Below are positions 6,285-11,180 of a stretch of 64,000 nucleotides of DNA, piece after piece. Within the stretch, counting starts at the first letter, position 1. Every line of letters starts with the position of its first letter. The position numbers and the translations under genes were made by a program. The stretch is from the sequence record PV764603.1; one strand, given 5' to 3'. Below the pieces are notes generated by a model. That model did no database searches. It saw nothing but the letters and a program-made list of their open reading frames with translations, and was not told the DNA's origin.

Positions 6285-8570
6285 ATGATTACCCATCAGG
6301 ATACACTGTTCTCCAACATCCTATACGGAAATAATTGGAGTGCAGCTACCTACCAAGCCGCAAATCGGTTCACCATCCAAGGTGACAAGCGAACTTCGTA
6401 TGAGGTAGGTACCCAGGTTCAGATTCTCACGTCCGCCGTAGCTACCATGCAGTACAGCTACGTCAGTGCAGTCACATTCGCATCCAACGTCACTACGGTG
6501 ACAGTCAGCGACGGCCTGTTCGCCTCGGGTCAGAAGATCAATGTTCGTGCGTCGCCGTTTGGCGCCAACAACATGCCCCTCGGCCGACGCTTCAAAGAAA
6601 TCAGCGTGTTCGGTGCGAACGGTCTAACGATCTCGAATGCGAGTCCGAAGTTCACCTTGTTCGTGGAGGGCGTTGGCGCAGGCAAAGTCAACACGTTCAC
6701 TTTCCAGCCGGGCTCTGACGGTATCTCGTTCAAGGTGGGACGTGATGCGATTGGTCTCGATGCCATGCGCATCGACGCCACTTCGACTGCCATCACCAAG
6801 GTGACGTTGTTCTCGCCCCTGACCTTTGGCGCGACGTATACGGGCGCCCTGACTTCGCTGACCGACCTTCTGACGATTGGTCAATACGCACTGACCTATT
6901 CGGCTACGGGTTCTTCGACCGGCAGCAATCGTCTGTATATCTCCGGCCCTAATGGCGGCGAGTTCACCGTTGGTCCTACCAACGATGCTCAGGTATTCCG
7001 TCGTATTCGACTGCGTGCTACTGACGTTGTGGTCGAGAACAATCCCGGCGGTTCCTCGCAAGCAGGCTCGATCTGGCATAGCCTCAACTTCGATCCTGAC
7101 ACCCGTGTTACCAAGGGTCAGAATGGTTCTTGGATGGATTCGGCTTACACTGCGATCAACAACCTTAACAACGCTCAGGGGTATTTCAACCAGTGGGCAT
7201 CGGGCGCCGCACAGGCTCCTGTTGCAGGTTCGACGGGTGTTGTGCAAACCATGCACAGTGCGGGTGGCAACAACTTTAACCCTGTGGCTGGTGCTTCGCT
7301 GGTGCAGACGGCTTATGTCACCAATGGCACCGCACCTGCCCTGTATGTGCGACGCAACGTAGGTGCTTCGGGTTGGTCTGCATGGACTAAGCTGTATACC
7401 CAAGCAGATTTCTCGCTTGGCGATTACGTCAAGATCGCAGGCGGTGATACCATCCAGTCCCCGATCACTGTACGTACTGCCTTGTCCGTTGGCACGACTG
7501 CGGATGCAACGTCCACCCTGAACTTCGGTACCTCGGCCAGTCCCAACGGTCCTGCTGCTACCATTTCTGTTACGGGCGGCGCAGCGACCACGGGTCGTGG
7601 TGCAATGACTATCAACGCGCAGTCCATCGCGCTGCCTGCACTGAACGTCAACGGTACGATGAACGTTTCGGGCGCTGCTTCGATGGCGGGCCCACTGACC
7701 ATCACTACTGGCTCCATACTGCTGGGTAACGGCACGTATGGGGAATCGCGTATTAGCAATACCTTCGACGACTGGTATTTGTATTCCAGTCCTACGGGAC
7801 TTGGCTGGTACAGTATCAGTAAGGGTAGTGCTTTCTCACTGGACAAGAACAGCAAGGCGTTCACGTTCAATGGTGCGGGTACCATCAACGGTCAGACTAC
7901 CATCAATGGTGGTCTGAACGTGGCGAGCGGTAGCGGCATCATCACTTCGGGTAACGTTGTTGGCGCTAACGGCAACTTCTCCAATGACGTGTTTGCCCCG
8001 GGTGCTTTCCGTGGCGCTCGCCTGCACATCTATGCAAACTGTATTGCCTATGGCCAGGGTTTCCTCCCTAGTTGGAACGACTACGGTGATGGCGCAACGG
8101 TCCTGACTAACGCACGCGGCGGTGGTACGGGCGGCTTCAAGTTCCGTCAGATGAACAGTGATGGCGGTGGTCAGGTCTTCCTTGCCTTCATCAACCCGAA
8201 CGGTACCATCGGTTCGGCGTCGGACGAACGCATGAAGGAATTCGGTAAGGTACTCGACCTGTCTGACGCTCTTCGGTTCATCCGTGAGCAGCGAGTCAAG
8301 CACGTCAAGTGGAAGCACACCGGCGAGGAGGATATTGCGTTTGGTGCGCAGAGCATCTTCAAGACCACTAGATTCCTAGCCCACTACGACAAGGGTGCTG
8401 ACTTCTGGCAGCTGTACTACCCGAAGGTAGCTCTGTACCATCACGAAGCTCTCTTCCATATCCTTGAAGTGCAGAACAATCACGAAGCCGACATTCAGAT
8501 TCTGATTCGCAAGAACGAAAATCTGGAAGAGGAAGTGAAGCAGCTGCGCGAACGGTTGGATTCTCTCTAA
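6285..8570 (+). CDS. Tail fibre with C-terminal peptidase S74 intramolecular chaperone
   Basis: Gly/Thr/Asn-rich beta repeats; SDERMKE autocleavage motif, DIAFGAQ, and a C-terminal coiled coil (LEEEVKQLRERL). Confidence 0.88.
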   Translation: MITHQDTLFSNILYGNNWSAATYQAANRFTIQGDKRTSYEVGTQVQILTSAVATMQYSYVSAVTFASNVTTVTVSDGLFASGQKINVRASPFGANNMPLGRRFKEISVFGANGLTISNASPKFTLFVEGVGAGKVNTFTFQPGSDGISFKVGRDAIGLDAMRIDATSTAITKVTLFSPLTFGATYTGALTSLTDLLTIGQYALTYSATGSSTGSNRLYISGPNGGEFTVGPTNDAQVFRRIRLRATDVVVENNPGGSSQAGSIWHSLNFDPDTRVTKGQNGSWMDSAYTAINNLNNAQGYFNQWASGAAQAPVAGSTGVVQTMHSAGGNNFNPVAGASLVQTAYVTNGTAPALYVRRNVGASGWSAWTKLYTQADFSLGDYVKIAGGDTIQSPITVRTALSVGTTADATSTLNFGTSASPNGPAATISVTGGAATTGRGAMTINAQSIALPALNVNGTMNVSGAASMAGPLTITTGSILLGNGTYGESRISNTFDDWYLYSSPTGLGWYSISKGSAFSLDKNSKAFTFNGAGTINGQTTINGGLNVASGSGIITSGNVVGANGNFSNDVFAPGAFRGARLHIYANCIAYGQGFLPSWNDYGDGATVLTNARGGGTGGFKFRQMNSDGGGQVFLAFINPNGTIGSASDERMKEFGKVLDLSDALRFIREQRVKHVKWKHTGEEDIAFGAQSIFKTTRFLAHYDKGADFWQLYYPKVALYHHEALFHILEVQNNHEADIQILIRKNENLEEEVKQLRERLDSL

Positions 8571-8612: not shown

Positions 8613-10004
8613 ATGTGGATCACCCCTCAGAATCAAACTCTTGATGACACGTTCGATCCATACTTTCCGGGTACAACTCGGTGGTATGGTTACACCGGCA
8701 TCCTCATCAACAACACGCAAGACACCTACGATCGGTACGCTCCTTTGCAGTATGGCAGGCAAGCTCCATCCACGGCGATCCTTGCGCAGAATCAGGTAGA
8801 CCTGAATCAGATTTACGCAGCCCGAGGTACAGCAGGCTACCTGCAAGGTATCTCTATCCCAAATTGCTACGTGGGCTGCTCTGGCGTTACCATCAACGAT
8901 CTTCTCGCTGCTCGATGCACCATCATCATCAAGAACGACGGTACGTGGCAGCAGTGGTTCTATTCCACCAACTACAAGACGGATAGCCCGGGTGCATATG
9001 CACCTCCTAATCGTGGCATCCCTCGAACCGAAACCAACTTCAGCAACGGACGCATGAACGCCGCCGGTAACTGGGCACAGATTCCGTTCGCTGGTGTGGG
9101 TAACAACTACGAGACTTTCTGCCACGCTCCTTGGGCCCCATACGAAAGCAAGAACCCACCTGATCTAGATTGGGGTACTGCCGATCACTATAATCGGTAT
9201 GATGCTGCACTCATCAACTATATCTGGCACAACTTTAAGGGCCAAGGACAGTTCGGTAGTGCTAGTGATCCATACGTGGTGCAGAACACTACACAGAACC
9301 CCAACGAAGACATTCCTGACGGTCGGGTATACCGCATCGACCGCGACATTCGGTTCACCCTTGGCTTGACTGCACAGGGACGCAACAACGTTCGTTGGAA
9401 CTACGACGACAACGGCGCTCTGTCATGGTACAACCGAGCCAACTTTTCGGTGTACATTCAGACACCCGGTGGTGGTCAGCGTGTAGGTGCCACGTGCTTG
9501 ATGGCCAATGAGATTCGATGGAACGCATGGAATTGGACGGGTGGTAGCGTCGGCGGCGGTGGTGGCGGTGGTGGCGGTGGTTGCGTTGCTGCTACCAGCT
9601 ATGTTGACTTCCAAAAGACCGCAGGCACTGTTGAGGCAGGCGACTACCTCATGGGTATGACGGATGATCTGCAATTTATGGAGCTACACGTCCTGAGTGT
9701 GCGTCGTCAAGTGCAACCGTGTGTCCGACTCTACTCAAAGAGTGGCGTCACCCTTGTGTGCTCAAAGTCCACGCCGCTGACCCTACAGAACGGAGATTGC
9801 GTGCTGGCAGGCGAAGCACGAGCAGGTATCAAGCTTCCGGTACGATTCTTCGCGGCTGATCCTGAGTGGGAAACCATCGTCAAGATCGAGGAGGTTGGCA
9901 ACCGGGAAGTGATGCTCATCAACTGCGGTGGACAGAGCTATGCTGCCGGTGAGTTGCCGGGCCGCTATATCTACACCCACAACAACAACCAGCAGAAGAT
10001 GTGA
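8613..10004 (+). CDS. Fibre-tip adhesin (gp38-like position) with poly-Gly linker and C-terminal Hint (intein-like) domain
   Basis: Directly follows the S74 fibre; 10 Gly then CVAATSYV (Cys324), VRLYSKSGVTLVCS, WETIVKIEEVG.REVMLINCGGQSYAAG and IYTHN. Confidence 0.75.
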   Translation: MWITPQNQTLDDTFDPYFPGTTRWYGYTGILINNTQDTYDRYAPLQYGRQAPSTAILAQNQVDLNQIYAARGTAGYLQGISIPNCYVGCSGVTINDLLAARCTIIIKNDGTWQQWFYSTNYKTDSPGAYAPPNRGIPRTETNFSNGRMNAAGNWAQIPFAGVGNNYETFCHAPWAPYESKNPPDLDWGTADHYNRYDAALINYIWHNFKGQGQFGSASDPYVVQNTTQNPNEDIPDGRVYRIDRDIRFTLGLTAQGRNNVRWNYDDNGALSWYNRANFSVYIQTPGGGQRVGATCLMANEIRWNAWNWTGGSVGGGGGGGGGGCVAATSYVDFQKTAGTVEAGDYLMGMTDDLQFMELHVLSVRRQVQPCVRLYSKSGVTLVCSKSTPLTLQNGDCVLAGEARAGIKLPVRFFAADPEWETIVKIEEVGNREVMLINCGGQSYAAGELPGRYIYTHNNNQQKM

Positions 10005-10423
10005 TGATTGGTTCTGACCAACTCTCAGAAGTAGGTGTACCTGTCGGAGAGCTCTCCATTGGGAGGACTCTCGACGTATATGCGGTGGACGATCTACACT
10101 CGGTCATCCGCCTGAAAGGAACCGTCTCAAATCGGGTCCTGCGCAGTGCAGAAGTAGTAACCATCACAACTGCCTCCGGCGCTTCCGTTGTGGTGGCTGC
10201 CCAAAGTCGCCTCCCTGTCTATAGCGGACAGACAGCGCTGGCTAAGAATGTTGGTGCCAACATGATTGCTGTGATGGCCCCTAATGGCGCTTTTCGGTGG
10301 GAGCGGGTTGCCACCATCGAGGCTGGTACTGAGGCCGTAGTGGACCTCAAGTGTGAAGGCTACATAGTAGCCGGTAACGATCCTAAAACCGGGCTAATCT
10401 TGGTGTCTGGATCGCTGCCGTGA
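10004..10423 (+). CDS. Stand-alone degenerate Hint-like protein (139 aa)
   Basis: TGATG overlap with the adhesin; VGELSIG, VVTITTASGASVVV and WERVATIEAGTEAVVDLKCEGYIVAG align by eye with the upstream Hint, but Cys1 and HN are absent. Confidence 0.55.
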   Translation: MIGSDQLSEVGVPVGELSIGRTLDVYAVDDLHSVIRLKGTVSNRVLRSAEVVTITTASGASVVVAAQSRLPVYSGQTALAKNVGANMIAVMAPNGAFRWERVATIEAGTEAVVDLKCEGYIVAGNDPKTGLILVSGSLP

Positions 10424-10502: not shown

Positions 10503-11180
10503 ATGCAACTCCAGGTTCTTCTCTCCTCTGTCGAAGCTCTCAAGTACGTTGCCGGCCTGCGGCTGCCTGCTGTCAAGGCGTTCAAGGTCAGTTCATACCT
10601 GCAACGTGCTCAGGTCCATATTGACGCATGGCAGGCAACTGGCCGGACTCTGGCCCAGCGCCACTACGGCGAAGACCAGCAGCCGCTGTCTCCCGAAGAC
10701 GCCGTACAGTTCAAGGCAGCCACTGACGAAGTGCTTGCTTCGGACGTCGAAGTCGATACCGTCAAGCTCCTGAGCTACCCGGCAGACTTCAAGGAGGAAA
10801 GTTTCATCCCCCTGAATATGGCCATCCTGTCTGAGCACTTTGTTGACGTTACCAAGCCCGAAGCTACTGGCGTCACCAAGATTAGTCGGGGTAAGCTGAT
10901 TGGCGCTTACATGTCTCTTCAACAGTTGGGTCAGCAGGAACTGCCGAAGGCTGTTGGTGAGAATCTGCTGTTCAACCTGATGACGGTCCGAGACCTACTG
11001 AATTCGTTCTCGGAGCGCGACGTTGAACTGACTAAGCAGGGCGATGCGAAGGCTCTGGAGGAATATCGTTCCGAGGAAGTGGAGGTCAACTTCTATCCCA
11101 TCAACATCAATGCGTTTGGCGATGTTGAAGTGGCTCCGGCACTTCTCGTAGATGCCGCGTGGCTCATCACTGAGGAATGA
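10503..11180 (+). CDS. Tandem-duplicated DUF1617-like helical protein (possible fibre assembly chaperone)
   Basis: Two similar halves: L..L...LP...A..L...L...... ..L...DVEV / EEVEV...I...F.D....P..L. Confidence 0.5.
   Translation: MQLQVLLSSVEALKYVAGLRLPAVKAFKVSSYLQRAQVHIDAWQATGRTLAQRHYGEDQQPLSPEDAVQFKAATDEVLASDVEVDTVKLLSYPADFKEESFIPLNMAILSEHFVDVTKPEATGVTKISRGKLIGAYMSLQQLGQQELPKAVGENLLFNLMTVRDLLNSFSERDVELTKQGDAKALEEYRSEEVEVNFYPININAFGDVEVAPALLVDAAWLITEE

Follow-up and report, generated by a model that had tools for sequence, protein, structure and literature searches.

The window considered here, a 64,000-nucleotide stretch of sequence record PV764603.1, carries at the end of its baseplate and tail-fibre module two adjacent genes: a fibre-like gene whose product terminates in a Hint domain, the fold shared by inteins, Hedgehog (Hog) proteins and BIL domains, and a small open reading frame (ORF) that starts within the stop codon of the first (Table 1). 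The small product is, judging from sequence comparison and structure prediction, a full-length, catalytically dead paralogue of the upstream Hint module, and it is referred to below as the pseudo-Hint. Xanthomonas phage PhiXhv-16, a jumbo myovirus of 229 kb, matches the region at 100% identity, and PhiXhv-12, PhiXhv-15, Ep026 and Ep032 match it at 96–99.9%.

Table 1. Features of the fibre-like gene and the adjoining pseudo-Hint gene (positions in the window)
Feature	Coordinates	Strand	Description
Fibre-like gene, 463 residues	8613..10004	+	N-terminal domain of ~312 residues, 10-Gly linker, C-terminal Hint; stop TGA at 10002..10004
Poly-Gly linker G314-G323	9552..9581	+	Immediately 5' of Cys1; putative scissile bond Gly323|Cys324
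Putatively active Hint, C324-M463 (140 residues)	9582..10001	+	Profile and fold matches to inteins
Cys1 codon	9582..9584	+	
Block-B equivalent S384-L391	9762..9785	+	Without His
T455-H456-N457	9975..9983	+	
Six-residue tail NNQQKM	9984..10001	+	Contains the conserved Lys
TGATG stop/start overlap	10002..10006	+	Candidate translational coupling site
Stand-alone pseudo-Hint, 139 residues	10004..10423	+	Complete Hint fold; Met1 at the Cys1 position, no block-B motif, no terminal His-Asn

The upstream reading frame closes with AAG ATG TGA and the ATG at 10004 uses the final A of that stop codon, so that the limits and the overlap given for the small ORF in the initial annotation were correct; the GenBank annotation of PhiXhv-16 places the start at the same position. 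The homology to the upstream Hint that had been seen there by eye is also real. BLASTP of the small ORF against the C-terminal segment of the fibre gave 26% identity over 74 residues (expectation value, E, 0.002), and a profile–profile comparison of six small ORFs with five fibre C-terminal domains by hhalign aligned the same blocks with a probability of 94.7% (E 6.2e-8, 124 columns). A phmmer search with the small ORF over 1.84 billion representatives recovered five orthologues of 137–139 residues (P0010-P0014) and the C-terminal domain of an unrelated tail protein of 1763 residues (E 4e-4; in pairwise comparison 37% identity, E 5e-13). Two other matches of this search, P0015 and P0016, carry RCC1 repeats and were discarded as repeat-driven false positives. 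Local hidden Markov models (HMMs) of the active Hints and of the pseudo-Hints match each other's group, the active-Hint model scoring 33.9 bits against the small ORF of the window. By these comparisons the similarity between the small ORF and Hint domains is well beyond chance.

Comparison with known structures leads to the same fold. The profile of the six small-ORF orthologues matched the NpuDnaB intein first among PDB sequences (E 0.0065) and the TvoVMA intein next, and five of the seven PDB matches listed were inteins. AlphaFold2 modelled the small ORF with a predicted local distance difference test score (pLDDT) of 90.5 and a predicted template modelling score of 0.85, and the top 50 Foldseek matches of this model in the PDB, among them 1at0, 6tyy, 2lwy and 6y75, were all Hog, intein or BIL structures (best 6tyy, E 1.5e-6, template modelling score, TM, 0.75). 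In BFVD the best matches were phage proteins of 285–912 residues (TM 0.79–0.85), several of which look, by protein length, like the LucasX, DLP_6 and XacN1 proteins treated below. No curated Hint model (Pfam Hint, Hint_2, PT-HINT, Intein_splicing and Vint; NCBIfam) matched the small ORF at E ≤ 1, and the weak signals for CrmD_SECRET and HelR that appeared when both proteins were scanned against Pfam, PHROGs and NCBIfam were judged spurious.

In a joint alignment the small proteins cover the whole domain (positions 1–137 of about 140), and the missing Cys1 and terminal His-Asn of the initial annotation are readily seen: in all orthologues found the initiator Met falls in the Cys1 column (M-I-A/G against C-V-A), and the chain stops, with L-I-L-V-S or a similar sequence, where Y-T-H-N aligns. 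The S-x-S/T-T-P-L-T-L block is missing as well and the segment aligned with it is variable. Structural landmarks are kept, namely the W-E motif, several glycines and the A-G of Y-A-A-G.

The fibre-like protein itself matches phrog_11610, a family of unknown function, at its N-terminus, and its homologues are 50–57% identical; the label of adhesin attached earlier to this gene comes from its position alone. The profile of its C-terminal domain matched the gp41-1 intein first among PDB sequences (E 0.0057), followed by DnaB inteins. Its AlphaFold2 model is weak (pLDDT 58) and was used for fold-level matches only, the top 50 of which in Foldseek were all inteins, Hog or BIL (TM about 0.7). No Hint model of Pfam, PHROGs or NCBIfam matched the domain. 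In an alignment of 22 active-type members with several kinds of N-terminal domain (N-domain), Cys1 (C324 in the window) and the terminal His-Asn (H456-N457) are invariant, a run of glycines precedes Cys1 in nearly all members, and the full series of invariant elements reads Cys1-Val, S..T-P-(L)-T-L, Trp, Y-A-A-G and T-H-N. The block-B histidine, normally the best-conserved residue of inteins, is not among them: the S-E-E-H of gp41-1 aligns to S-K-S-T, and the invariant S..TPLTL block contains no His. This family thus carries an invariant S-x-S/T-T-P-L-T-L in place of the Thr-x-x-His of inteins, with Thr at the position of the histidine. The description of the upstream Hint as active therefore holds for Cys1 and His-Asn and fails for the block-B histidine.

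The sequence that follows the terminal Asn is equally unlike that of a splicing intein. Only 3–8 residues remain, with no C-extein of the classical kind, and across the 22 members position +1 is taken by N, M, A, L, V, I or P and, in occasional cases only, by S or T. Since both the block-B His and a conserved +1 nucleophile are lacking, the domain appears closer to B-type BIL and Hog-like cleavage modules than to splicing inteins, and self-cleavage is predicted from the invariant Cys1 and T-H-N. A Lys stands one or two residues from the C-terminus in almost every active member, whatever its N-domain, in tails such as QQKM (window, 9984..10001), DQKQ, EKI and KP (P0002-P0032), which suggests that the conserved tail or its Lys may have a role in thioester resolution or docking.

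A survey of related phages, which had been proposed as a check on the pair, found that the small ORF invariably accompanies a fibre-like gene ending in a Hint. This holds in eight lineages (the window clade, L016/L017, L002, L003-L006, L015, L012/L013, L020 and L021), which comprise all those found to have this fibre N-domain. The same N-domain of about 310 residues, starting W-I-T-P-Q or a close variant, is present wherever the contig includes the fibre N-terminus, and the small ORFs of L020 and L021 score E 1e-42 against a pseudo-Hint HMM built without them. In every lineage the ATG of the small gene overlaps the fibre stop or lies at most 3 nucleotides from it, the junctions of the other seven lineages being ATGA, TAATG, TGAccATG and TAAaccATG, and a Shine-Dalgarno sequence of the GGAG type before the small-gene start was found in none of the eight. 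From touching or nearly touching codons without a Shine-Dalgarno sequence we infer termination–reinitiation coupling; of the translational coupling first claimed for TGATG, the gene arrangement is thus directly observed and the re-initiation step is deduced from it. Scans of IMG/VR with the alignments of both proteins gave no match, the Joint Genome Institute (JGI) metagenome scan with the pseudo-Hint alignment gave one short locus (L015), and the window contains no other copy.

The active-type Hint module also occurs on other N-domains, and there it has no partner. No pseudo-Hint was found near the 280-residue proteins of the XacN1 ORF231 type, near the 1763-residue tail protein, near a tandem of Hint proteins of 322 and 331 residues, or near DLP_6 'VlrC' and LucasX LUCX_306 in the loci examined for each. 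The short ORFs that do lie in these surroundings are not pseudo-Hints: this was the result for ORFs of 55–57 residues after the XacN1-type Hint protein and for an ORF of 197 residues after the 1763-residue protein, and the ORFs of 139 and 140 residues that L007 and L009 carry some 5 kb further downstream proved to be unrelated, coding for coiled-coil or membrane proteins. In the loci examined the module therefore appears to have no general need of a partner, and since the partner is found only with this fibre N-domain, it tracks the N-domain rather than the Hint.

Some proteins with this module deserve mention in their own right. The same C-terminal Hint, unannotated, is present in four further phages in culture, which infect Xanthomonas or Stenotrophomonas and belong to unrelated types, XacN1 (ORF231, L023), DLP_6 (AAY80_267/268 'VlrC', L024), LucasX (LUCX_306, L025) and RTH11 (H17), on tail or virion-associated proteins deposited as hypothetical or as VlrC. 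The tandem genes belong to a metagenomic phage (L022:4927-6894), and each has its own N-domain, a poly-Gly stretch and a complete Hint of the active type; an arrangement of this kind could give rise to a stand-alone copy. Additionally, in BFVD the small Hint-fold viral protein A0A1C3NFC5 (153 residues) has an accession adjacent to that of a larger Hint-containing one, A0A1C3NFC6 (506 residues), and A0A2Z3EFP0 (172 residues) with A0A2Z3EFR4 (695 residues) is a second small and large pairing of accessions. They may represent comparable pairs of other phages.

The age of the pair can be approached from its divergence. The pseudo-Hints and the active Hints form two groups, each monophyletic with support of 100/100 in a maximum-likelihood tree, and the pairings of the window with L016 and of L003 with L015 recur in both groups. 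Over six complete lineages the N-domain and the Hint each average 55% pairwise identity, compared with 37% for the pseudo-Hint, and the small ORF stays at 137–141 residues across lineages in which it is 26–60% identical. A pseudo-Hint is only 18–24% identical to the Hint of its own neighbour, against 37% for a distant member, the domain of the 1763-residue protein, and a recent tandem duplication of the neighbouring Hint was ruled out on this ground. The dead copy is, as far as trees and identities tell, of single and old origin, has been kept since, and co-diverges with the fibre. Compared with Ep026 the small gene shows 5 synonymous and 2 non-synonymous changes, a ratio of non-synonymous to synonymous substitution rates (dN/dS) of 0.14, and the fibre gene a ratio of 0.01. 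The constant length and the low dN/dS of the small ORF are taken as signs of selection, and its standing as a real gene is supported. Synonymous divergence from the same phage (L018) is uneven, 0.19–0.30 in the fibre gene and 0.05 in the small ORF, which suggests a recombination boundary close to the gene junction.

Genes placed just downstream of fibre genes usually encode maturation or assembly factors. It is proposed here, with about an even chance of being right, that the small protein is a non-catalytic, co-translated and fibre-specific maturation or assembly factor that acts by binding. Ribosomes that finish the fibre would re-initiate on the small gene, and its product would be made next to the nascent fibre C-terminus, in as many as one copy for each fibre chain provided that re-initiation is efficient. 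The small protein would then work by binding and not by catalysis, whereas the chemistry would be left to the cis Hint, for which Cys1 and T-H-N point to a thioester at Gly323|Cys324 and cyclisation of Asn457; the cis Hint would thereby be lost from the mature fibre. Because the presence of the small protein tracks the N-domain and not the Hint, its target is more likely the fibre body, its tip or the fibre–Hint junction than the Hint domain. Several points weigh against this proposal: neither Pfam, PHROGs nor NCBIfam shows similarity of the small protein to known tail-fibre assembly proteins, the cis Hint has no block-B His, so that its own activity stays putative, the dN/dS of the small gene rests on only 7 differences, and the faster evolution of the small protein (37% against 55%) suits a structural part that faces the host just as well as a chaperone.

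The initial annotation had itself offered another explanation, in which the dead Hint and the active Hint of the fibre form a pseudo-symmetric or strand-swapped heterodimer that gates autocleavage, either delaying it until assembly or triggering it. Two homologous Hint folds are indeed translated consecutively from one mRNA, domain-swapped dimers are known for inteins (one, 5bkh, is found among the fold matches), and conservation in the pseudo-Hint is highest in its last strands, which would line the active-site cleft. This explanation is nevertheless considered unlikely, as the Hint module does without a partner on other N-domain types in the loci examined, the occurrence of the partner follows the fibre N-domain, no consistent charge complementarity was found between Hint and pseudo-Hint, and the partner is no more than 18–24% identical to its neighbour. 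A bolder reading makes the dead Hint an obligate trans partner in a new fibre-maturation chemistry, in which it would decide how the Gly323 thioester resolves: docked in place of the cis Hint or beside it, it could direct the thioester to hydrolysis, to transfer to the tail peptide or its Lys, or to attachment to another virion protein. If this were true, fibre release or covalent anchoring would depend on an inert Hint paralogue and the pair would be the first Hint enzyme and pseudoenzyme pair, although the prospect of its being correct is regarded as slim.

It is also conceivable, if doubtful, that the pseudo-Hint is a virion subunit which caps or forms the distal fibre tip once the cis Hint has left and takes part in receptor binding, in the manner of the T2-type gp38 adhesin. 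Its gene lies directly 3' of the fibre gene, as many copies as there are fibre chains could come from coupled translation, and it evolves markedly faster than either fibre domain, which is common in host-facing parts; relaxed constraint after loss of catalysis would however also explain the faster rate, and a pattern of hypervariable loops was neither looked for nor seen. The least probable explanation, to which hardly any credence is given, is that the small ORF is a dead remnant, an orphan C-terminal cassette left by replacement of the fibre module, or only a frameshift extension of the fibre. The small ORF is not closest to the Hint of its neighbour, which suggests a different source, in all lineages it lies in frame -1 relative to the fibre, and its open frame runs 17 codons upstream of the ATG. 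On the other hand, an intact ORF of 137–141 residues has persisted in eight lineages down to 26% identity with an ATG that coincides with Hint position 1, the fold prediction is confident, and the proteins form a monophyletic group that co-diverges with the fibre. Frameshift fusion of the two products was rejected specifically, given that no slippery heptamer precedes the stop and the ATG lies 2–3 nucleotides past the stop in two lineages.

The preferred reading of the small protein as a binding-type assembly factor can be set beside several known systems. B-type BIL and Hog proteins, whose cleavage mechanism is well established, resemble the fibre in having a Hint fold at the C-terminus of a variable protein of extracellular type. 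The fibre domain also shares with them a scissile site of the Hedgehog kind (Gly|Cys), a His-Asn at the end and the lack of a conserved +1 nucleophile, features from which cleavage rather than classical splicing is predicted; the pseudo-Hint resembles them in fold only. The differences are that neither protein is matched by the Pfam or NCBIfam Hint models, that the active family has Thr at the block-B His position and a short tail with its nearly invariant Lys after His-Asn, and that the pseudo-Hint is a separate gene without any catalytic residue. Split inteins likewise place Hint-related sequence in adjacent phage genes, but here either product aligns over the full domain, so that the two are no complementary halves, and splice residues are missing from the second.

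Among fibre maturation systems, lambda Tfa, Mu U' and T4/T2 gp38 are comparable in being encoded by a small gene just 3' of the fibre, with lineage-specific co-evolution and tight translational linkage. The pseudo-Hint differs from them by the lack of any sequence or family match, by its Hint fold, and by its paralogy to one of the fibre's own domains; to our knowledge a Hint fold has not been reported for tail-fibre assembly chaperones. In Alteromonas phages, tail-fibre assembly proteins encoded just 3' of fibre genes have been described as 'transient chaperone caps' (PMC10579305). The upstream Hint can also be likened to Peptidase S74, the intramolecular chaperone autocleavage domain of phage tailspikes and fibres (PMC7824862), in that it is a C-terminal module that would aid fibre maturation and then excise itself. 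The folds are unrelated, however, and S74 uses a Ser-Lys dyad whereas a Cys thioester and Asn cyclisation are proposed here. The comparison goes no further on the side of the small gene, since we know of no free-standing dead paralogue of S74. As far as sequence can tell, the Hint/BIL/Hog fold, the upstream chemistry and the position of the small gene as that of an assembly protein belong to what is known, and the undescribed element is the pairing. The earlier remark that the module had not been described agrees with the literature searches, which returned no Hint-terminated phage fibre, no stand-alone dead Hint partner and no combination of the two as separate genes; the paper on the PhiXhv phages and those on XacN1 and LucasX do not mention these genes.

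Hint domains, whether in inteins, Hedgehog or BIL proteins, are self-contained single-turnover machines. A conserved and separately encoded dead paralogue of this domain, coupled to a virion protein that ends in a Hint, would accordingly amount to a pseudoenzyme use of the Hint fold, and the pair offers a simple two-gene system for studying Hint autoprocessing in phage fibre maturation. In a wider sense, a C-terminal Hint module with the signature polyGly-Cys ... Thr-His-Asn plus a Lys-containing tail is missed by current domain libraries. Several phages of Xanthomonas and Stenotrophomonas that are unrelated to one another, XacN1, LucasX, RTH11, DLP_6 and the PhiXhv jumbo phages, carry it on tail or adhesin-like proteins, and this bears on the annotation of receptor-binding proteins in phages under development for crop biocontrol. 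The module could also serve as a natural self-removing tag.

The surroundings of the pair are those of a tail module followed by lysis genes. Upstream, PHROG matches to baseplate wedge, tail and tail-fibre families were obtained for the ORFs at 1321, 3153, 4766 and 5927, and a short way downstream lie two glycoside-hydrolase endolysin-like genes and the spanins. An ORF of 221–226 residues without family match (10503..11180 in the window) follows the pseudo-Hint in every lineage whose contig reaches beyond the pair, and may be part of the same module. In sister jumbo phages (L012:2292-4652, L020:2632-5004 and L021:2632-5004) the long fibre immediately upstream of the Hint fibre has a Peptidase_S74 domain, so that self-removing C-terminal modules are already in use in this gene cluster; its counterpart in the window (761 residues, 6285..8570) gave no S74 match in the Pfam scan. 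In the related phage L002 a gene of 279 residues after the endolysin genes (L002:9881-10720), with no equivalent in the window, shows a weak match to an ADP-ribosyltransferase exotoxin family (Pfam PF03496). Finally, the records of Ep026 (OQ603353, H4) and Ep032 (OQ603359, H5) score equally against the region and yet carry different host labels, Xanthomonas sp. Q and Erwinia sp. YA1 respectively.

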